This document shows, one piece after another, positions 27,230-41,057 of a stretch of DNA of 64,000 nt (the stretch's first letter is position 1; each line of letters opens with the position of its first letter). Origin of the DNA: Botryllus schlosseri (taxonomy: Eukaryota); the NCBI GenBank assembly GCA_051294905.1, contig CM119378.1, forward strand, positions 8,122,001-8,186,000. The letters run 5' to 3'. The notes under the pieces were generated by a model. That model did no database searches. It was not told the origin of the DNA and worked only from the letters and a program-made list of their open reading frames with translations. The translations under genes and the position numbers were made by a program.

Positions 27230-30200
27230 TTACGCAAGTATTCGGGAGTCGCGGACTTCTCCCTTCGAAGTTTTCTCGCACATCACCATGAGATCGTAAC
27301 ATATTGCTTCCGTTACCACCGAGTCCTCGCGGTAGTCTTGATGAGACCGAACGAACTGCCTTATCCACTGCGCAGTCGTGAGGTAGTCACCTGGAAAGTA
27401 TACTGTCACTCACCAAGAGCGATGGAAGACCCACAAGGTCTAATCGTTACGTCAACAACACCACGACGCCCGAATGGAAAGTTCAAAATTTGAAGGGAAA
27501 GCCGCCGTACTGACATTTCAACGGAAAACTTGCGCAGGAAATAGACTTCGACGACTAGAATTATCTAATTAGAGCAAAATGCCTGCAATCCGATTATAAT
27601 CTAGCTTGTAAAATGTTTCTTTGCTGTAATTCTTATTCTAATCTAATTCGTGAAATGTTTTTATTCTCTAATTTTAATTGTCATATTGTTTCTGATTTTC
27701 CGTAAAATGCTACAGAAGAATGGTATCGTGCGAAAAGAGCCAAGCTTGCTGTACAAGACATTTTCCATTCTCTTTCTTTATGAGAATGAAATTTGATTCG
27801 ATACGAACTGAACGTGATTCAAGTTGTCGCGAATTATAAGTAATTCAAATTATAATCTAATTTATAAAGAAAAACTGTGTAGCTATAATTTAATTCAAAT
27901 CTAGTTAGGAAATAGCTGTGTAGCTTTAATTCTAATTCGAATCTAATTAGGAAAAGCTGAAAAGTTTGTAGTTGTCCGACTCCGGTTTATTAAATGCTAG
28001 TCAAGGAGGGGAGACTCGTAAAACCATGTTTTTCGAGATTGCGAGAATGATGAGACAACGTTATTCCTATATCACCACCTACCGGACGCTCTTTTCGATA
28101 TCAACGTTAAATGCTGATCGACGATCTGCCTTGTCGATTTGTGCATCTCCGTCGCGGTTGAGAGAAATCCCCTTATAATTGGTATGATACCATCGAACTT
28201 GCCTTCCTGGGTGGCGGTCAGAACGGAATGAAAAAAAAAATGAATTAGCAAAACGAAATCTATTTCGTTGGCGTACCAATCCATTTATCAAAGCGTTCAA
28301 CGATAGTCTTTCGAAAACGTCGTTATTCTTGCTAGATTTAACCCGACACCAAAACTTTCCTTGTCGAACAGCATCGTTTGCGTCGGCTTGTAGCATATTT
28401 TCATCGACCTGATGAATACACGAAAGGAATTGATTGATATAAGATGGGAATATATATTAGGGGATATATGGGAATATATGGGAATATATGGGGATATATA
28501 TTTTGGGAATATATATATGGGAATATATATATGGGAATATATGGGAATATGGGAATATATATTAGGGGTCTTCAAAAATGACTTTTTTTCTTAAATGGGG
28601 TGAGCAGAAAATTTTAAAATTTTTGGTAATTTATTTTTATATAATAAATAGAAACTTTGTTCTCCTGTACAATGCGGCTACTGGCTGGAGTTGAACCGAA
28701 TTTGGTGTGTAGGCTTAAATTAGGTAACCTAAGACTTTTATCAAGTAGCCAGTACAATTTGAGAAAAAAAGTCATTTTTGAAGACCCCTAATATATATTA
28801 TACAATATACATATATACGAGCCATTTCAAAGTATTGCATCTAAAGCAGCTTTTGTGAAAGCAGTGGGCTAGTCGTCCTAAAACCAACAGGGCTACACCA
28901 GCAGAAACGAATAAATGGACGCGTCAATCAGAATTTTCATAAAAGAAAGAGTTTTGTACCCGGAATGGCATGGCAACCAATCACGCAATGGATAGCGCTA
29001 TTGTTATTGTGTTATAGCAGTTTGCATTCATTACATTGCTTAAATAGCCTATGTTTAGACAAGCTATTTTAATAGAATATATCGGACATTAGCTCAGGTG
29101 TAAATAAGCGCAAGATTTGTAACAGTAAATACCACCATTCATCATACATATCTAATGCCCTGATAGATAGAAGTCACAACGTTTGGAATCTGCACGCTGA
29201 CTAGCCATTCGCTCATACGTGGCTGATTTGTTACGATATGAAAGCGATTCTCACCTTCGAGATTGGCATTAGGAAATTCAACTTCCTCTGCACAATAACT
29301 CGGGAAAGGAGGACGGCAAACGTAACGAACGCGGCGTTTTCGAAGTCGGTTAGCTGCACGTCGCATACCCTCAGTTCAAGTCTCCAACCCATATCAATGT
29401 TGGGCGGTGGTATTTTAAATCTGACCGCCTGATAGTTCAGAGATTGTAGACTCTGTGGAAAAGTCAGTACTGATGATCTGTACGGATATATATTTAATTT
29501 ATATTTAGTCGCGATTGAATAACACCGCCCGGTACTCTGGATCGAAGTTACATTAACGCAGTTATGCCGTCTCGACTTTTTGGCCTCAGCCGCTACAAAC
29601 TAATTTCTTTACGTTACAAGCACATTCTGGATTTATGGATTATGTATTACAAATTATAAAGATAACTCTGGTCTATGGAAGCCAAGTTCTGGCAGGACAG
29701 TCATTTATCAGCAGAGGTGGTTACTACTCAAACTTTGCTACTCAAGTAGAAGTGACTCCGAAAATTTCTACGTAATCGCAAGTAGAAGTAGTTATTCCCA
29801 CGACATGTCAAAACTATTTCAAGCAGTAGAAGAAAATTAAAAGCTGTTTCAAAAGTTTTAAAACGTACATTTGATTTAGGGGCGGCATATACTTTTACCA
29901 GTAAATTGTAGTTGATCGTTATCTGTATTTTGCATGACGCAGGATTTCACGTAGCGCTACTTGACTATACTGCGATTGAATATAGATAGAAATCGTTTCC
30001 AAAGATCCATATACGTTGCTCAAGCTTATAGACATGCAGATGGAGGTTGACGAGTTCATAATTGCATAATTGCATAATTGCAATGACTGCGCACATTGTT
30101 GTCAGCTTCCCACATAGGCCGTGAGTCAGTGATGAGCGGATATTGATTTCTGAGAATCCGAATCCGTCCGACAGCTCGAGTCTCTGAGTAGCTATCCGTC

Positions 30201-33200
30201 CGAATCCGAACAACCTCAATCAAAATCCATGCGAGAAATGCGAATCGAATAAGTTTTCCGAAGAATCCTAATTGTACGGCTGAGCTGCGGGCAGTTTTTA
30301 CAAAAGCTAAGGTTAGGGTTAGCTGGTATATTTGCTTGGACCTTTTACAAATCAACGTTAGAGTGTTACCAGTCCTATCAGAATGTGTTTACGCAGAAGT
30401 GGTCAGTAACGAAGTACTTCTACTTTTTGGAAGTACTCAAGTATATTTCCTCTACTTCTGGTACTTACCAGGGCTGTGGAGTCGGAGTCGGAGTCGGTGG
30501 AGTCGGAGTCTGGGTAATTTTCGCTTGATGGAGTCGGAGTCGGAGTCGTGAAAACTCTAATAGCTGGAGTCGGAGTCGGAGTCGTGGGGGAAATACTGAC
30601 TGGAGTCGGAGTTTGTGAGAATGACCCTGACTTCGACTCCAACTTCTCTATCATGAAAACATTTGCTTTCAAAGAATTTTCAATATAATTTTTATGTACC
30701 ACCAATCACTGTTATTAATAGCCATACAGATCAGGTGCGGCCAGCACGTCGCACGCAGGCCAAATTTGGCTCACGAGAAGGTTAGGTGTGGCCTGCGAGG
30801 TAATTCTTGAAATTATTTATGACATCAGGTACAATTGCAAGGCCAACCAAAATTTGATTAGCATGACCGCGAAATTTGATGATGACTAAAACAACAGTTC
30901 TGACGCATTGACGTATCCAGGGGCCAGCCACATTTATCCCAGACCTTCGTATATGACCATAAAGTAGAATATTTCATAGCAGATTCATTTGACTTGAAAT
31001 TTGTCTCGGTACTTCGCATGATTTGTCACTAGATTTCTTGCATTCAGTATTTGAGCCCCCTTCTGAAAATTATAAATAAATATTATTCACAGAATTGAGT
31101 CTAACTATATTCGCAATTAGGAGATAATGTGACGTCCAACATGCGGCTTCGCTTGTGCATTCGCAGCGAGATCGTCGACAAAACATTTGCACAAAATGAT
31201 AGGGGTCTGTTCACTGATACCGTCGATTTTGCTACGTCTAAACGTCGAATAATCCTGTCCTTGTCAAATGAGCCCAGTGGTATACAGATGCGACCCCCAA
31301 TGCATGGATGTTAGCAACATATTTGTTGATATAATTCAGTAACTATCTTGCAAAAAAATTTCGCGCTTCGCGCTACCAGGGCCTGATTGCGCACTGCACA
31401 GTTGCATGACATATTGTTATCAATTTTAGAGCGTATTAATGTAAGTCCTGTTTGCAATGTTACCTAATTCGGTTCGATCCTATCGGATGACTAAAAAAGG
31501 TTATCAACATTCCAGTTGCCCGTGCAATGGCTCGTAAATCTCATATGTCCCTATGGCCGAAAAAGTTGCCCACCCCTAATATAGATAAAATTAGACATTA
31601 CTTGCAAATTACAACTCAGTTGCACAGGAGAAAAAAATCGCAATTTGCGTCAAAATTGATGCAATTTTTGGAATTATACCATGATACTGTGACAGAGCAA
31701 ATGCATCGGCTGGTTTTGTAAAATTGTAAAAATGGTGTAAATTTCACCAAACGATGCTTCCAACTTGAAAAAATTAAAACTATTTGTAGTGTAGCTTAGC
31801 TGCTTGGGTCGAACAAATGATTAAGAAAGACTGCAAGTCCCAATCCTTGAATACTTGATTAAGTACATGTAGACTAGACATAGGCTATGGTCTTCGACTA
31901 CTTAACTAAATTCCATTTATGACCAATGTCTATTAGTACCTTAGTAGTAAGAGTGTGCGTGCTTGGAAACAGTATAGTGTGCAATGACAAAATTAGTAGG
32001 TTCAATCTCTTTATTAGTTGCTGACTCATACACAAGAGCTACACTTGAATCTTTTATCTACATTTTTTTATACAGGATTGGATATCTGCCATATTTGAAT
32101 GATTCATACATTTCAGGATATTAGAGAGTCCATGTTATAAAAACTTGAAAAGGAAGGATATTTAGCAAATCTTTCTTTCATGTTAATTGCATAGTGGATA
32201 ATTCGAGCTGTGCCACAATGAAACAATTTAGCATGCCACCGTTAATCATATGTTTGCATATGTTTAATGGTTGTATGATAGTCATTCAACCGACAATGTG
32301 GCATATAATTTTCGAAGTAAATTGGTAATAATGCTGGAGTCGGAGTCGGGAGTCGGAGTCGGAGTCGGTACGTTTAAAGACTCAGGAGTCGGAGTCGGAG
32401 TCGGTATATTGAAAATGTGTGGAGTCGGAGTCGGAGCCGGAGTCGGTGGTAAAATTTACCGACTCCACAGCCCTGGACTTACTCAAGTAGATCTGATTTT
32501 CTTTACTTCTACTTCCACTTCGTAATATTTTATGATCTACTTACTTACTTTTCGCTATTTTCAGTTTGTCAAGTAGAAGTAGTTTAATCCCCCGACACGA
32601 AAGATAGCCTGAGGAATTTCGGGGAAGTTTTCACGGAGTATACCAACATTTAATATTTATAAAAGTCAAGTGAAGCCCAATAATTTTGTTGCGCTTTGCG
32701 CATAGTAATGATGGAGTGACAAATATGTTTTCACGAAAGTATCAGTGAATATAATTTAGGTACCGGATTGCTTGGTTCCTCTCACACCGCATTGTCGCCC
32801 ATTTCTAATATTTGATCACAGTAAATAAGGCCCACCATAACGTTTGAAACTACCGTTTCTCAATCTAGCAATTACCTATCATATCGGAATCTAGAAGCCC
32901 ATTACGTGTCTTGCTAATCTGGAAAACCCCGGTTTTTGAACGTTACACCTGTTTTAGCAGATCATCTTTGAAGCTTTATGGACAAAATACATAAAATGTA
33001 TTTTCCGCTTTCTAGAAGTGGTATTTGTATTTCACCTTCAATTGCGAGTATCATACTTTGAGTTCTAATTACTTTCAGTTCTTTTTGTCCGCAGAATATA
33101 CATGTTGAAGCGTAAAAGCAAGTGTAGTAATGCCTCTGTTTTCCGAAACTAAAGCTACACTAAATATAACTTTTACGATCCACAATATTTGTTATTAACG

Positions 33201-36200
33201 TATACTAATCGCGCAAAGTGATGAAACCGTATCCGATACCACTTCTACGTATTGCTCTTCGCCTAAACTTGGGGCCTTATAATATGGGGTAGGGCGCTAT
33301 GCCATGATCTTCTCTAAAAACGGGGTCTTCTAATAAAGAAAGGGTTCGTATCGCATTTTCATATCAATACTATAATTTGCATCCCATGACGCTAAACAAT
33401 GCTTATTCTGTCGAAAATTGATACCTCCTGGGATGCCTCAATACGAATCAAGCTCTCTGCACCTTGCGCATAGCTCAATTCGCAGTTTTTGACAGTCCAT
33501 GCGAAGTGGCGAGATAGCGCAGTGATATAGTCCGCGGCTGCAACACCAATGGGTGCGGGTTCGAGTCCGACCGAGGTCGACTTCAGAATTCCGAAACCTA
33601 GGCTCCTCCTCGCCACCTCGTCCACGTAAGCGGTGATTTACAAAAAGCCTGGAGGTGGGCCGTGCTATAAGTCGGCAGTTACAGAAAATAATGGAGTTTA
33701 ACGGCCTGGTGTAAATGACCATAGTATAGTCGACAAACACCATGAACACCACAAAACAAACAAGCAGACAGTCCATGCGAACGAACTAAGACTGTTATCA
33801 AAACTACTTAGTTACTTGAGTAGATTTAAAGTCAGTCAATCCTACTTCAAGTAGTTTTAGGTGGCTTATTGAAGAAGTACTTCTACTCGTACTTCAGTAG
33901 ATTTTGTCGTCGCTACTTCTACTTCTACTTGAGTAGCTTCCTTGACTACTTTGACCACCTCTGTATACGGACCATGTTTGGTTGTCGAGTTGACGATTTT
34001 TCATTGCCTTGAAATCACGTCAAGTCACTTCTGGTCAGAACTATCCAAAAATATCCGAAGCTGAAGTTACAACTATCCGAAAATATCCGAAACAAAATCT
34101 ACAATAGTATCCGAATCCAATCCGACTGTCTCAAAATTGTGCAAAATCTTTCTTTCTTTCTAGTAATCAGCACGCCAAATTGAAATATGGATCGTGGAAC
34201 ATTTTCAAATCGAAATTAGGGGTCGCGACCATAAAAAGGTTGAGAACCATTTATCTAAGGCAATACCCGCACCTGGAAGCCTAGGCTAAGACTAAGGACT
34301 TTTCGCAATCAAAACGGAAATCACGCTTCTACTCACTTCAAAATAAAAGTAGTCGTGATCCACATCCTCGGTTACTTTTTCTTCAAACATCAACATCGGC
34401 TCACGAGCGAAGGTATTCGCTAAGTGCGCAGCAAGGCCTTGACACACACCTAACGGTACAAATATAATATACTTAGCATGGCCACTGCATTTTGGGTCAT
34501 CATGAAGTCAATTTTATGAAAACATGCCGGTTCATGGGCAATTTTGTATGACTTTGTCTTGATGTGTCGCCAAAGGAGTCGCATATAGGAGAGTAAGATG
34601 ATAGCAAGACAAAGGCAATAGGCATGATTAAAATATTCTTTCTCGCCGCACTAATAGTATAGAGTAGTATTGGTCTAGACCCGGGTGATATTTTAGCGAC
34701 AGACCTCGTTTCAACTTTCGACACTCTCCTATCGGGGCCTATACGATATAACACACAGTCAGTTTTCGTAGACTACGCTCCTATCTATTCATTGCATCGC
34801 ATGGTGTCTTGTGCGAAAAATTCGATTTACGTGTGTATTTCATGAATATCATTTCATGTATATATTATAATTCTCATGATGATCTTGTATATTTTTCACC
34901 CCGTATCATAAATGGAAGAGAAATGGTCACACCTTCTTTAATAAGAGTCTTCTGAACCGCTTCATCAACCGGGAACGGCAAATCGTTATACTCTCGACCA
35001 TTTTCCGAAATGTAGCTTCTGATGGATGAGCACCTCGGATAGAAAGGACATCGACTGCACACAATAATCATGTCAATCTTTGACTTTGCATCATGTATAA
35101 GCATTTCCGATGCAAATACCTTGCGCTAGAAATTAGAGTGTCTTGCTCTTCCGGTGTTCTATCGTCCGTGCCCTGAACTAAGACACTCCACCTTGTGTCT
35201 AGATCCAACAGAAAACCGCGGAATATAGGAGATGATGCACCTAAAGCTTTCTGCGCACGAAAAAAAATCAGCAAACAGCATACCGTACGTTGGATTGTTC
35301 ATATTCATAAACAACAAGAACATGGTTACCATCCAAAAAGATGTTACTATCATCAGCATATACTTACTATGATCGGAGACAACGCACCAAATTGATCGTA
35401 AAGCAATTTCAGCTCTTCTAAATCCTTCGCTTGCAACGTTATTTGTAGACTGCAGCATCCGTTAGCAAACGCCATACCATCCATGTAAACGTGGTCTGCA
35501 CGCGAAGCAGTACTATCTACATGGCTATTGAAATTTTCCAGAACCGGTCGTGATGTTTTACGATCCTGGAATACTTTTCGAAACACATTAATTTAATAAT
35601 TTACCCACCAAACAGAGCACAGATGCTGCACAACGTAGAACTTGACTAAATAAAGCGATTGTATTGATCACCAGAATATGGATCTGCTAAATGTTAATTT
35701 GTGTTTAGTATAATGTGGTGTGTAGATGCCCTCCTTATATACACCCACCTCAATTTTCGTTTGTGTTACTCGGGTGTAGGACCGGGCAAAATCGAGTACC
35801 CGAGCGACTCGATTCTGAATCACGTATTATGTTTCGAGTCGAGTATTCGAGTATCACTCATTATGAAGTCATAACAGTATGCAATATGTAAATTTTAAAC
35901 ATGCACCTTTTATGTCATCACAAAAATATGATGCCTGTTGTCCATTTCATTAAAGATACTTTGGTCTTTTTTCGACCATACCGATTTCACTGCACTTGTG
36001 ACAATGTTGTGGGATGATTGTGACTTCGAAAATGTGCTATTTCCAGTAATGTTCGTAGCTTTGTTTCGTATGCTGCGACACGGTCAATCAAGGTTTCAAG
36101 GCTTCCACAGTGGAAAATACAATCGAAAATATAATTCTCATTGATAAATTAACTTTCAGTTGCGAGGAGCATCTAATTTTAGTGCTCGAAAAAATTGTCT

Positions 36201-39200
36201 TCTACTACTCGACTCGAATCATTACAATTAATACTCAATTCAGATTCGAGTGCTCGAATCATATGATCCAGCCATACTCGTGAGCTGTTGTAAATTTCTA
36301 CCAACCCGAATGGCCTAATGCAGGGATTTACAACCCTTATTACAGGCACATTTACAGCGTACAAGCAACATTCAATAACGGGCCTTTTACGCCATTTAAA
36401 TTGGATTTCTGGTGTAGCGGGATGCACAAAATATTTTTTGAAGCGACAATAACAACACCTAACTTTTCACTCAAAAGCGATAAAAGAGAAGGCGAGACTC
36501 TATGGAATCGGTTAACATGGAATCGCCGGAAACTCTGCAAAAATGAAGTCTATAATGGTTTTTAAATCACCAGAAAACTTTTTGAGTTGTTGGATGACTT
36601 TTGACGTAAATATTACTGTGACCAGTCAGAACAGTCCTATACTTTAATATTTTTATGATATTTCTCTTAGTCACGTGACCTGATTCACCTGGAGTGGATG
36701 TTTAATTTAAAATAGAAACTTAATATTTTATTATGAAAATTGCGGTACGATGGTGTTGATTTCATGTATTATGCCGTATACCAATCAACATCAATGCTTC
36801 GGGATCTAATTATATATTTGTAAGAGTTCATACCTTAATTGAGCCAACCCATGAGTTTTGCGAGCTTGTTTGTTTTGTGGTATTCATGGTGTTCGTCGAC
36901 TATTATGGTCATGTACACCAGGCCGATTTTCTTCATTATTTTCCGTAACTGCCGACTTATAGCACGGCCCACCTCTAGGCTTTTTGTAAGACGAGTTGGC
37001 GAGGAGGAGCCTAGGTAAACCTCCAACACTTAATTATCGGAATTCTGAAGTCGACCTTGGTCGGACTCGAACCCGCACCCATTGGTGTTGCAGCCGCGGA
37101 TCATACCACTGCGCTATCTCGCCACAGTTTTGCGAGACCAGGTTTAGCTCTGACGCCCCTGCTCAAAGACTATACTTTGCTAGAGCATGTGTTGTGCAAC
37201 AGATGTCGAAAATTGAGTTCCACTACGGTGGAGCACGTCACAGCCCAAATGGCATTTTAATTACTTTCACATACCAGTCTAATAGGCGAATTAAACTCAT
37301 TTCGTGAGATGCACATTACTACAAATTGACACTTTCGCGGGATCACAATTTACTCCGCACGACTGTAGGCTGCACTGCACAGTGCACAACTGCACAATGC
37401 ACATGCACATTGCACATCCCTTAAATTCTGTACGTCTTGATCGTGGATTGAGCTCATATACTGCAATTCACGTTGAATTTTATATGAATTCATACCTGGA
37501 ACATTGATCGAAATTTTTCTGCCCCGTCTCAAATTTGCATTTCTTGTCATGGCTCTATAAAAGTTTCAAAATCTATAGCGTGCTAGTATGGAAACTTGGG
37601 ATAGCTTTTTTCGTCTCACTCGAATCTGGGTGTTAGGGTGACTGTGAAATCAGGTAGAAAGCTTGAATCCATCAGAGAACCATTCAGCGGAAGGTCTTGA
37701 GAATCTGCTAGCGCTCCATCGCATCCAAGCCTGTGGCGACAAGCATTCTACATTTCAGAGACAGGGTCAAACCCGTTCAGATGCCACCGTCACACACCAC
37801 AGGACGCTCTGCGGTCGAGTGTATGGTTGGTGATTAGCGTCTGACTCATCTACCGATAGCGGAGTTTGGCGTGTATGAGCGTCATGTTAGAATACAGGCC
37901 ACGCAAAATCTGGTGTGGCAGGTTTTGAGTGCGAATATACTGGGAAAACTCAGCTGTATATAGTGTCGTTACAATAACGAGTAGCGAATTCCCTGTCTCA
38001 CGCTTGGTTCGGAATCTATCATACTATTTATCATTCGAATTATCATCAATTTCATCAATTCAAAACATCACGAGATTGTGGCACAACACGAATGAATCAG
38101 GAATGTTGGACGTTAGCGGCAAACGGCACGTGATCGTAAGAGTTGGATTAAATTGCATATTCATGAAATCAACCCATTTATTTTCGGCTGACCACTCGTC
38201 AGGGGTCATCGTCAGCAACTATACTAGAGAATTGGAAAGAACATTGTTTAGCAAGGATCGTTTCTCCAAATCATATGACGTCACCGGATGAAATTTCGAC
38301 AAACGGAGGCGAAGAGATCGCTCAAGTTCAATTGACTATATTTTGGCACAAAGTAGGTTGGTGTAGTTTGATAAAAGTCAAATCCGTGGCATACAAATGA
38401 ACATGTGAACGGCCTTTTTCGACGACTCGAAATCAGTCGTTGCGGTCTCGATTACCCCTGACGAATGTCAGTCTAAAAGATTCGATTTCAATATGAATAT
38501 AGTATTCCATTAGAGTTCTGTACCGGCAAGAGTTTGTTTAAAAGTTAGATATAATCCAAATATGTTAGCTACAGAATATTTGTCCGAAGTTTGATAGAAT
38601 GAATTGTGAAACCACGAATAAATATCGCCTCGTCACGCTCACGGTTTCAGTGAGACGCCATGAATTGCGATGGGTACGCTGGGCTGGTACATAGATAGGC
38701 TATTATTACATGTTGTGTTACCTTGGAAATGACGACACTGTAACAAGTTTTTCATTCTCCTCCATCCTTGCCTGACCCTCCTGTCTCCTGTAATTAGAAA
38801 AAGACGACATACATCAGACGCGAGCACAAAATGTTTCCCTCGAGAAACCTCATGGACGCAGCACTAGTTTATACCCATTTAAATGGATGTAATAAATCCA
38901 AGGCATAATGCCTTTGAGAAAAGAAAAATATTAAAAATACTCGTTTGCAAAAATTTCAGCAAGTTATCGAAACAATGGTTCTAGATTGGGGATTCGAGAA
39001 ACATTTTCAGGGGGTCCGCGTAACCTCTAATTTTTCAATATGAATGATGATAACCGAATTTGTGATGTACGAAGGTCGGGAAAATCATGTCGTAAATTTA
39101 TACGCAATTGCGAGTAGAGCTAGTGATTTCCAAGACGTGACAACGCTATACTTGAAGTGGAAATAGAAAATGAGGTCTGAGAATTAATCAAGTGGTAGTT

Positions 39201-41057
39201 TCAAAAAGTAGATCCGGTCGGAGTGTCACATATTTTTAGCAGTTAATCGAAAGTAGCTACTTTTGAACTCGAAAGATGCATCTTCGAGGCTAATGCAAAA
39301 TAACTGATGACACTACAAATAAGTGCAAATTATGAAAACATATTCTAGCACCATCCCAGTCAACAAAAGTGTGTACATTCAAGGCCGAAACAGGCGAAGA
39401 AAGTGCAGGAGAGAAGTGAACGCAACCGTCTTGACACTACAGTGAGGCGGCACCTTTGATGTGCAAAAACTGATCGCCCTCGAATTCAGAAGATCGATCG
39501 TTCTCATTTCCATCGGTCGGCCAGCGAGATTGGTGTCAGCGTAATTAACCAATCAAATTACGCTTGATTATCACGCTGCTTCAACGTGACGTTTCTTCTG
39601 CCTGGCTTTTCCAGGTTCGTGAGCACTGGAGCGTGGAGTGATTGTGATGTAATAAGTCATCGGATGTTGTTTACCGTTGCACACTGAAATTTGAATTATC
39701 GTCCGTACCGGCGAATTGTATTTCCGAGACTGTAGCGATGGAGTGGAATATGAATGAAGTTTTTTGTTGAGATCAGTGGAGCAAGAGATAGTTCGGGTTA
39801 TTTTTGAGATTTGAGAATAGCAGATCAGTCATCAGTCCAGTTTGTAATTTTGTACGACCATTTCACTTCCCAAACTAATTCGCGTTGTCCGCGGCGGCTT
39901 GACGGACAAAAAGCGGTCGGCGAATGCAGAAAGGTTGAGAACCACTAATCGGCAGTCTACATACGTTGGTATCAATGCAAAGTACCTCGCATTCATGGTC
40001 CTCTCTACATCACCAAGTCCTGCCAGGCCTTCGAAAGGCGTGGCCGGAGTACTTTCGATCATGAACGTCGAATACTCAAGTGTCCAGTTTCCCACGAGCT
40101 CTCTGCAATGAAATACAATAAAAAAAATAATGTGCTCTGTTGTACAGCCTGAATATATTTTTATGTTTAGGTCTACTTCTCGTTCTTGCATGTTCGATTC
40201 AGTTTTTCACAGAGTCGGTTTCCTGTCAGCAGTAAGCGCGCGGCGCGCTTAACATTGTCGAATTCGATCAACATGTATTCCATCTAAATGACGGTTTATG
40301 GTCAAATGTCAAATCAAATCCGGCCTACAGTGAGTGGCAATGCATAGTGATGACAACCTGGCATCAAATTTAAACCGAGGCTTATCACTATGGTGACAGG
40401 CAAAATCGAATCTGGATCCAATATCCACGACCTAATCGAATCAAATCACATTTTTCCAGTATACTGAAATGAATGCGAATATTACTTCAAAATACCGGTG
40501 GCTTGAATAACCGCGTGAAGTGTGCGCTTAGTTCTATGCTTGATTGCTAGCCAGCGCCATCCCTCAATATAGGGATCTATAATTTGACGACCGCAAGAAT
40601 GATTTGAACCGATTTCGAATCAGTGACTCGTTTCGCCCATTTCTACTTATTGCCTTCTTTACGACATTCATTCCGGTGATTTTCATTACGGAATGCATGT
40701 AACAGGCGTATGTCTTGGCAATTATTAATTTTCTACTTATTCCTGTTACAGTTGAAGTATTTAATATTCAGTTACCTTCACTTATATGACAGCAATTCCT
40801 CGATGCTACAATACGAAGATACATGCAATACACAACTTATCTTATCTTTGTTAATAAATCACTCTATACTGTATGCAATGTAAAATATGAATATATTTCC
40901 CTGCCTCATCCCCGTATTTCAGGTCATCCGGTGGTCTCAACTTCATCCTGTTGTATATCTCCAAGAACTGTTCAAGTGCACGCTTCTTGATAAATTTACC
41001 GTATCTCCGCGTTTCGTCCCATGTCATTAAATTCTTCATTGCCGTCTGCAGACCCAT
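27230..41057 (-). CDS. GCLC: Glutamate-cysteine ligase catalytic subunit-like (divergent), 14 exons, 599 aa
   Basis: Exons 41057-40905, 40283-40177, 40102-39986, 38787-38722, 37730-37620, 37554-37496, 35573-35368, 35250-35120, 35054-34933, 34449-34337, 29452-29255, 28408-28277, 28206-28083, 27390-27230; total 1800 nt, all phases compatible. Motifs GDE/MEY, EY..MIESTP, SFPRLGC, DHVYMD, TRW...DDRT, RFK.PPP, WRLELR, QLTDFENAA. Orthology versus paralogy unresolved. Confidence 0.92.
28445..28560. repeat. (GGGAATATAT)n minisatellite abutting a MITE terminus
   Basis: Directly visible degenerate tandem of GGGAATATAT in GCLC intron 11. Confidence 0.8.
28555..28797. mobile_element. Short MITE with about 35-bp TIRs in a TA-rich target (Tc1/mariner-like)
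   Basis: TATATATTAGGGGTCTTCAAAAATGACTTTTTTTCT ... AGAAAAAAAGTCATTTTTGAAGACCCCTAATATATA. Confidence 0.75.
30469..32475. mobile_element. hAT-type element with (GGAGTC)n subterminal arrays, itself holding another hAT-like element (about 30730-31577)
   Basis: TIR CAGGGCTGTGGAGTCGG / CCGACTCCACAGCCCTG; TSD GTACTTAC (30461-30468) versus G-ACTTAC after 32475. Confidence 0.85.
33506..33766 (+). mobile_element. tRNA-derived SINE with (CAAA)n tail, full-length copy
   Basis: A box TAGCGCAGTG, B box GGTTCGAGTCC; 15-bp TSD GACAGTCCATGCGAA at 33491-33505 and 33767-33781. Confidence 0.88.
35777..36276. mobile_element. hAT-type MITE (TAGGGCTGGGCA family), older copy
   Basis: Collinear with 45769-46282; degraded TIRs. 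Further copies at about 55976-56560 (inverted) and 57277-58235. Confidence 0.75.
36865..37125 (-). mobile_element. tRNA-derived SINE, full-length copy
   Basis: Reverse complement of the 33506 family; 11-bp TSD AGTTTTGCGAG at 36854-36864 and 37126-37136. Confidence 0.88.
38150..38530. mobile_element. Decayed Penelope-like fold-back copy in GCLC intron 4
   Basis: Inverted and direct remnants of the same terminal repeat (TTTTCGGCTGACCACTCGTCAGGGG; ATTACCCCTGACGAATGTCAG; GAGTTCTGTACC). Confidence 0.65.

Follow-up and report, generated by a model that had tools for sequence, protein, structure and literature searches.

To our knowledge, GCLC, the gene for glutamate-cysteine ligase, is usually regarded in animals as a single-copy housekeeping gene with a fixed job. 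A stretch of 64,000 nucleotides (nt) from the sea squirt Botryllus schlosseri (assembly GCA_051294905.1, contig CM119378.1, here C8, positions 8,122,001 to 8,186,000 of the forward strand; "the window") carries on its minus strand a GCLC-like gene, referred to as copy A, that raises the question of what a GCLC with a rebuilt substrate pocket might make. Our analysis of its sequence, splicing, relatives and selective history leads us to favour, at about even confidence, the reading that copy A encodes a neofunctionalised ATP-dependent carboxylate-amine ligase with a changed substrate preference, and not the housekeeping gamma-glutamylcysteine synthase. Coordinates below are window positions unless prefixed C8 or C7.

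A six-frame scan of the entire assembly for the Pfam family GCS (PF03074) returned 16 exon matches, all on the C8 minus strand, that belong to three genes:

Copy A: C8 8149230-8163057, minus strand; the gene in the window, 599 amino acids (aa)
Copy B: C8 8217564-8232280, minus strand; 599 aa, outside the window
Copy C: C8 8261228-8275553, minus strand; 644 aa, canonical

The three genes lie on the same strand within about 126 kb, with the canonical copy C about 100 kb from copy A, and all three reading frames are open. An earlier note on this stretch had raised the possibility that copy A is a paralog, and the presence of three GCLC genes agrees with it. Each gene is split into 14 exons, which have the same sizes in A as in B, and 8 of the 14 match copy C in size. 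Identity is 67% between copies A and B, 41-43% between either of them and copy C (41% for A) and 31-44% between them and other GCLCs, whereas copy C is about 60% identical to the GCLCs of fish, tick and hemichordate and has the canonical motifs GFGMGNSCLQ, KSRYDSIDSYL, NIQSTNWQSMRFKPPPP and HPRF. Copy A has neither the variable loop (about 20 aa) nor the C-terminal tail of the canonical enzyme. Five exon-bearing frames of copy A match PF03074, with E-values down to 1e-26; of the five, only exon 9, at 20 bits, falls below the 25-bit cut-off.

Residues kept and changed in the active site

Residues were numbered by alignment to yeast Gsh1 (PDB 3ig5), and their roles were taken from PMC5613772, Table 3. 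In the yeast enzyme, E50, E52, E96, E103 and E470 are Mg ligands, D49 and K451 contact ADP, and R472 contacts the side-chain carboxylate of glutamate; the hydroxyl of Tyr362 hydrogen-bonds the glutamate carboxylate (atom OXT), and NE1 of Trp445 hydrogen-bonds the cysteine carboxylate (PMC5613772, Table 3). A modelled Leishmania enzyme places Met322 and residue 328 (given as Gln in one passage and as Asn in another) in the glutamate pocket (PMC5613772), and by the register of the GFGMG..CLQ motif these two would equate with yeast Met262 and Gln268.

Copies A and B both keep D49, E50, E52, E96, E103, Q268, R313, R324, R361, R449, K451, E470 and R472. The cluster of Mg2+-binding glutamates is complete in each (5/5), and the nucleotide and phosphate contacts D49, K451 and R472 are present in both, together with the conserved arginines R313 and R324. 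The earlier note had stated that the metal and ATP residues are retained; every mapped metal, ATP and phosphate residue of yeast Gsh1 is indeed found in copy A. Its equation of the changed positions with yeast Met262, Cys266, Tyr362 and Trp445 is correct by alignment to 3ig5. The changes at these and other positions are as follows:

Yeast Trp47: Tyr in A, Tyr in B
Yeast Met262: Asn in A, Tyr in B
Yeast Cys266: Ser in A, Ala in B
Yeast Lys359-Ser360: Tyr-Pro in A, Tyr-Pro in B (the KSRY loop becomes YPRC)
Yeast Tyr362: Cys in A (Cys325), Cys in B
Yeast Thr443: Leu in A, Leu in B
Yeast Trp445: Tyr in A (Tyr402), Cys in B
Yeast Phe471: Leu in A, Leu in B
Yeast Glu475: Asp in A, Asp in B
Second His of QHIAHLF: Asn in A, Asn in B
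HPRF: TPRF in A, ELMM in B

Copy B additionally has Leu in place of yeast Ser442. The altered motifs first reported for copy A, namely KYGDE, AFANGCCSLQ (exon 7), YPRCSS (exon 9), and SLNYQAV and ELRVCD (exon 11), are all present as described. The replacement of EFRPME by ELRVCD is divergent only in part: F471L and E475D are specific to A and B, but the "VC" occurs in the canonical copy C as well (EFRVCE). Likewise, the original emphasis on the cysteine (acceptor) site holds for the replaced Trp445 contact but is too narrow, since the glutamate donor site is altered as well. Tyr362 is the glutamate-carboxylate contact and Met262 probably corresponds to the glutamate-pocket Met322 of Leishmania, which implies that the donor site has also been remodelled. 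Since the changes affect the donor pocket no less than the acceptor pocket, the product need not be a gamma-glutamyl peptide, and "another gamma-glutamyl peptide", as first suggested, would be only one of several product possibilities. Of the four first-shell residues, three are not the same in copies A and B, a number not significantly above the expectation from 67% identity (p of about 0.1, simple binomial).

Rarity, origin and selection

Two database searches supplied 269 GCLC sequences with which the substitutions were compared, with denominators that vary by column. Among the other sequences, the position of Trp445 is W in 243 of 250, that of Tyr362 is Y in 155 of 168, that of Met262 is M in 132 of 143 and that of Cys266 is C in 145 of 155. 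The combination found in A and B occurs in none of the 269, apart from the fragment P0001 described below; the changes are not common in other animals. The earlier note would have counted against its proposal a sole GCLC in the genome or substitutions widespread among invertebrate orthologs, and on both points the outcome leaves the proposal standing. A wider comparison used 173 near-invariant columns, each at least 90% conserved in canonical sequences (262 GCLCs). Copy C retains 166 of these 173, copy A 121 and copy B 119, so that 30% are changed in A. At 24 of the changed columns A and B carry the same state, including YPRC, the His-to-Asn change, T443L, F471L and E475D; these common derived states have thus been held since the two copies split.

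A fragment search with exon 11 gave a single A-like match, P0001, a 139-aa fragment from sequencing run SRR25569784 that is 80% identical over exon 11 and has Leu443, Tyr445, Leu471 and Asp475, as in copy A; it is probably an ortholog of A from another species. The corresponding search with exon 7 found no A-like sequence. One further candidate, P0290 (contig L019), was rejected as the canonical GCLC of an unrelated animal.

Maximum-likelihood trees join A and B as sisters with 100/100 support; their stem is about 1.4-1.7 substitutions per site long, and the backbone is unresolved. In the first tree copy C grouped with the GCLC of Ciona savignyi. A tree forced to group A, B and C had a log-likelihood (lnL) 5.3 above that of the free search, and one forced to group A, B, C and the Ciona savignyi GCLC was 9.1 above it; a tree that joins A and B with a sea-cucumber GCLC-like protein was 2.5 lnL units below the free tree. 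None of the constrained trees was rejected by an approximately unbiased test. Rare residues in common with A and B number 18 in copy C and 22 in Ciona, and are soft evidence only, the long-branched Gordionus also having 18. The constrained-tree likelihoods and the tandem arrangement together point to a local duplication within the tunicates and subsequent fast divergence.

Selection on the two copies was estimated by the Nei-Gojobori method. Between A and B, the synonymous divergence (dS) is 0.84 and the nonsynonymous divergence (dN) 0.20, for a ratio (omega) of 0.24 (bootstrap 0.19-0.32) that is approximate because a dS of 0.84 is high. Where canonical GCLCs are at least 90% conserved omega is 0.16, against 0.33 in variable columns. 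These values imply that both copies have been kept by purifying selection since they split, in answer to the dN/dS check that the earlier note had called for. Synonymous divergence of A and B from copy C is saturated. Within copy A, the RNA contigs described below show 13 variants, 6 synonymous and 7 non-synonymous, the latter mostly in variable-loop sequence.

Gene structure and transcription of copy A

Exons of copy A were located by six-frame translation, Pfam and tblastn with the canonical spider GCLC P0018, and the splice junctions were then refined. RNA contigs from runs X1 (2015 study) and X3 (2021 study) were aligned to window positions 35000-40999 only (6 kb). The uninterrupted 599-aa frame reported earlier is borne out: 14 exons on the minus strand, from the ATG at 41057 to the stop codon at 27232-27230, make up 1800 nt without an internal stop, and seven of the introns are backed by RNA. 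The exons are:

Exon 1: 40905..41057, minus strand; 153 nt; ATG at 41057; 3' end KYGDE, with Tyr48 (yeast Trp47), Asp50 (D49) and Glu51 (E50)
Exon 2: 40177..40283, minus strand; 107 nt; begins MEY; Glu53 is yeast E52; an X3 contig links ~40177 with 40102
Exon 3: 39986..40102, minus strand; 117 nt; motif TLEYSTFMIESTP; Glu96 and Glu103 are yeast E96 and E103
Exon 4: 38722..38787, minus strand; 66 nt; joint 38787/39986 in X3
Exon 5: 37620..37730, minus strand; 111 nt; TPRF at the 3' end, canonical HPRF; X3 contig
Exon 6: 37496..37554, minus strand; 59 nt; NANLRRG, canonical NIRxRRG; joints on both sides in X3
Exon 7: 35368..35573, minus strand; 206 nt; motif DHVYMDGMAFANGCCSLQ, including AFANGCCSLQ; Asn242 (yeast Met262, codon 35463-35461), Ser246 (Cys266, 35451-35449) and the kept Gln248 (Gln268); covered by X1 and X3 contigs
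Exon 8: 35120..35250, minus strand; 131 nt; Arg293 (yeast R313) and Arg304 (R324, in DDRT) kept; flanking joints in X1 and X3
Exon 9: 34933..35054, minus strand; 122 nt; YPRCSS in place of KSRYDS, with Cys325 (codon 35032-35030) at the yeast Tyr362 position; acceptor 35054 backed by an X1 and X3 joint
Exon 10: 34337..34449, minus strand; 113 nt; AHLANTF, canonical QHIAHLF, the second His being Asn369; junctions from the sequence model
Exon 11: 29255..29452, minus strand; 198 nt; motif SLNYQAVRFK...GWRLELRVCD; changed Leu400 (yeast T443), Tyr402 (W445), Leu422 (F471) and Asp426 (E475); kept Arg406, Lys408 (K451), Glu421 (E470) and Arg423 (R472)
Exon 12: 28277..28408, minus strand; 132 nt; 60 nt less than exon 12 of copy C, because the variable loop is absent
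Exon 13: 28083..28206, minus strand; 124 nt
Exon 14: 27230..27390, minus strand; 161 nt including the stop codon 27232-27230

Spliced contigs back 7 of the 13 introns (1, 2, 3, 5, 6, 7 and 8) at the modelled coordinates, all on the minus strand:

Intron 1: joint 40283/40905, minus strand; GC..AG ends; X1 and X3
Intron 2: joint 40102/~40177, minus strand; X3 contig
Intron 3: joint 38787/39986, minus strand; X3
Intron 5: joint 37554/37620, minus strand; X3
Intron 6: joint 35573/37496, minus strand; X3
Intron 7: joint 35250/35368, minus strand; X1 and X3
Intron 8: joint 35054/35120, minus strand; X1 and X3

Because these joints fall at the modelled coordinates, X1 and X3 must hold mature copy A mRNA. 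Intron 1 is of the GC-AG type in copy A (GAG/GCAGGG, donor at 40903-40904), whereas copies B and C have GT there; the GC donor is used, being spliced in both runs. Intron 2 is 74 nt long, the last base before its donor being 40177 and the first base after its acceptor 40102, according to the RNA contigs. Contig 9 of X3 (1403 nt) runs 1028 nt past exon 8, a length that would accommodate exons 9-14 (850 nt) and a 3' untranslated region. The codons for Asn242, Ser246 and Tyr322-Cys325 are covered by X1 and X3 contigs with no differences listed, and since two RNA runs agree at these codons, the pocket substitutions of exons 7 and 9 are not assembly errors.

The introns of copy A contain several repeats. 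A dispersed repeat is present as two inverted copies, at 33392-33776 (intron 10) and 36839-37307 (intron 6), with 89-nt arms that are 90-96% complementary. Sequence related to it is very abundant in the RNA runs, with contig depths in the thousands and 10-30x in sampled raw reads; Rfam and tRNA scans of the copy A gene region, this inverted repeat included, gave no matches. The intronic segments 35800-36400 and 38000-38400 show very high RNA contig depth with many loose ends and are probably families of transcribed repeats with no relation to the host gene. Hexamer-type simple repeats in intron 10, at 30400-30700 and 32290-32540, give Asp-Ser and Thr-Pro runs in several frames and inflate the list of open reading frames.

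Function and comparison with known enzymes

The history that we favour begins with a tandem duplication of the canonical GCLC gene, copy C on the same contig, most likely within the sea-squirt lineage, as the source of A and B; the stem that they share would then have changed in a burst, after which both copies were held under purifying selection. Copy A keeps the apparatus for ATP-dependent carboxylate activation (the five Mg glutamates, Asp49, Lys451, Arg472, Arg313, Arg324 and Gln268), while its substrate-holding positions carry Cys for Tyr362, Tyr for Trp445, Asn for Met262, Ser for Cys266 and YPRC for KSRY. We infer that the protein still produces an acyl-phosphate and couples it to an amine, with a preference for a donor, an acceptor or both other than Glu and Cys. 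A phosphoryl-transfer apparatus that has stayed intact in two copies over a long time favours continued catalysis over a pseudoenzyme or a dead gene. Plain redundancy is disfavoured by the replacement of both carboxylate-holding residues, the rebuilding of the KSRY loop and the presence of a canonical copy.

Several observations weigh against this reading. Eighteen near-invariant columns are changed in both A and B but to different residues, a further 10 are changed in A only and 12 in B only, and copy B is without HPRF altogether; such continuing loss of near-invariant positions after the split also fits relaxed constraint, and the omega that speaks for selection is, as said, approximate. Canonical GCLC is already promiscuous for acceptors, and altered pocket residues alone are therefore no proof of a new product. 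Two raw RNA-seq runs, X18 and X22 (6-13% sampled), gave no reads on copy A exons, which indicates that its expression is low or restricted. Glutathione synthetase (GSS) is represented in the genome by one gene and one stray exon-like match, so that no paralog of it accompanies the GCLC duplication. The stray match, at C7:20021895-20022062, covers positions 29-80 of the ATP-binding domain of glutathione synthetase; it is located some 17 kb upstream of the only GSS gene (C7:20039252-20047686) and may represent a duplicated exon or gene fragment.

The alternative that survives best, although we think it unlikely, is that copy A has remained a glutamate-cysteine ligase and is now a subfunctionalised isozyme whose kinetics or regulation have changed, for instance towards weak inhibition by glutathione, and which might serve a particular cell type or stress. 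Glutathione as an inhibitor occupies the same Glu and Cys sites of the ligase. All catalytic residues are kept in copy A, a Tyr in place of Trp445 could still give a hydrogen bond to the carboxylate, and purifying selection on A and B is as an isozyme would require; low or absent reads in bulk RNA runs combined with spliced contigs in several other runs would fit conditional expression. What an isozyme does not lead one to expect is the change of 30% of the near-invariant columns, including the Glu contact Tyr362 and the entire KSRY loop, nor a mutual difference between A and B at Met262, Cys266 and Trp445 if both must bind Glu and Cys. The canonical copy C is, moreover, retained nearby.

Still less probable in our judgement is that copy A is a pseudoenzyme or regulatory paralog that binds ATP and Mg or a partner (GCLM or copy C), forms no product and tunes glutathione synthesis. 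The loss of substrate contacts with a conserved fold would suit such a role, as would the low expression of copy A and an omega of 0.24, which is moderate and looser than we assume for a housekeeping enzyme. Pseudoenzymes, however, usually lose catalytic residues, and here both A and B still have the five Mg glutamates, Asp49, Lys451, Arg472, Arg313 and Arg324 despite the long stem and a dS of 0.84.

We regard it as very improbable that A and B are slowly decaying, functionless duplicates whose transcription is leftover promoter activity: the canonical invariants still being lost after the split, the GC donor at intron 1 and the absence of exon reads from two raw RNA runs would agree with decay, but both genes have kept an open reading frame across 599 codons and 13 introns at a dS of 0.84, the bootstrap upper bound of omega is 0.32, the GC-AG intron really is spliced, the 24 derived states are identical between A and B, and the A-like fragment from another sequencing run keeps the derived pocket states.

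The neofunctionalised ligase can be extended to a broader proposal, which we put forward tentatively and hold to be plausible at somewhat below even confidence. Copies A and B would be a lineage-restricted, GCLC-derived ligase family whose product is not gamma-glutamylcysteine but some other gamma-glutamyl amide or a compound made from a different acidic donor; the two would be specialised for different substrates, and similar retooling may have occurred independently elsewhere, as in a sea cucumber and a mite. A canonical copy C beside two constrained, diverged copies with the chemistry kept and the pockets changed is a test case for neofunctionalisation in animal thiol and gamma-glutamyl metabolism. 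Copies A and B may lead to a new ascidian metabolite, and lineage-restricted retooled ligases, if real, would be the sign of an unexplored class of animal small-molecule ligases.

Compared with canonical GCLC, as represented by human GCLC, yeast Gsh1 (PDB 3ig5, 3ig8, 3lvv and 3lvw) and the family PF03074, copy A has end-to-end homology, the 14-exon layout of copy C and all mapped Mg, ATP and phosphate residues, whereas its substrate contacts differ, HPRF is TPRF and Trp47 is Tyr. Copy B agrees with A in its 599 aa, exon sizes, YPRCSS, the His-to-Asn change, T443L, F471L, E475D and W47Y; it differs in the residues at Met262, Cys266, Trp445, Ser442 and HPRF and in the GT donor of its intron 1. 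Comparable pocket changes are found in other phyla: the GCLC-like protein P0017 of Apostichopus japonicus (PIK50773.1 / XP_071841741) has Y362M, M262I and C266A, the GCLC-like P0087 has W445Y and M262L, and P0046 of Oppiella nova has Y362F and M262A. These three and P0114 keep the catalytic set of Glu, Arg and Lys while the pocket deviates, and they retain 69-78% of the near-invariant columns, like A and B; unlike A and B, they carry other sets of substitutions, and the tree does not join them to the A/B clade. A literature search on GCLC paralogs in ascidians or other invertebrates, including these divergent proteins, returned nothing relevant, and the four appear to be uncharacterised. All four are annotated as glutamate-cysteine ligase, and the occurrence of altered-pocket GCLC-like paralogs in several invertebrate phyla makes this automatic annotation probably wrong for them. 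By sequence comparison, then, altered-pocket paralogs of GCLC are not unique to this genome, although the A/B clade itself is. In mammals, canonical GCLC carries out non-canonical gamma-glutamyl-peptide synthesis with acceptors other than cysteine. That activity reflects the promiscuity of an unchanged enzyme, whereas in Botryllus schlosseri the new activity would belong to a dedicated, diverged paralog in which the donor site is altered too.

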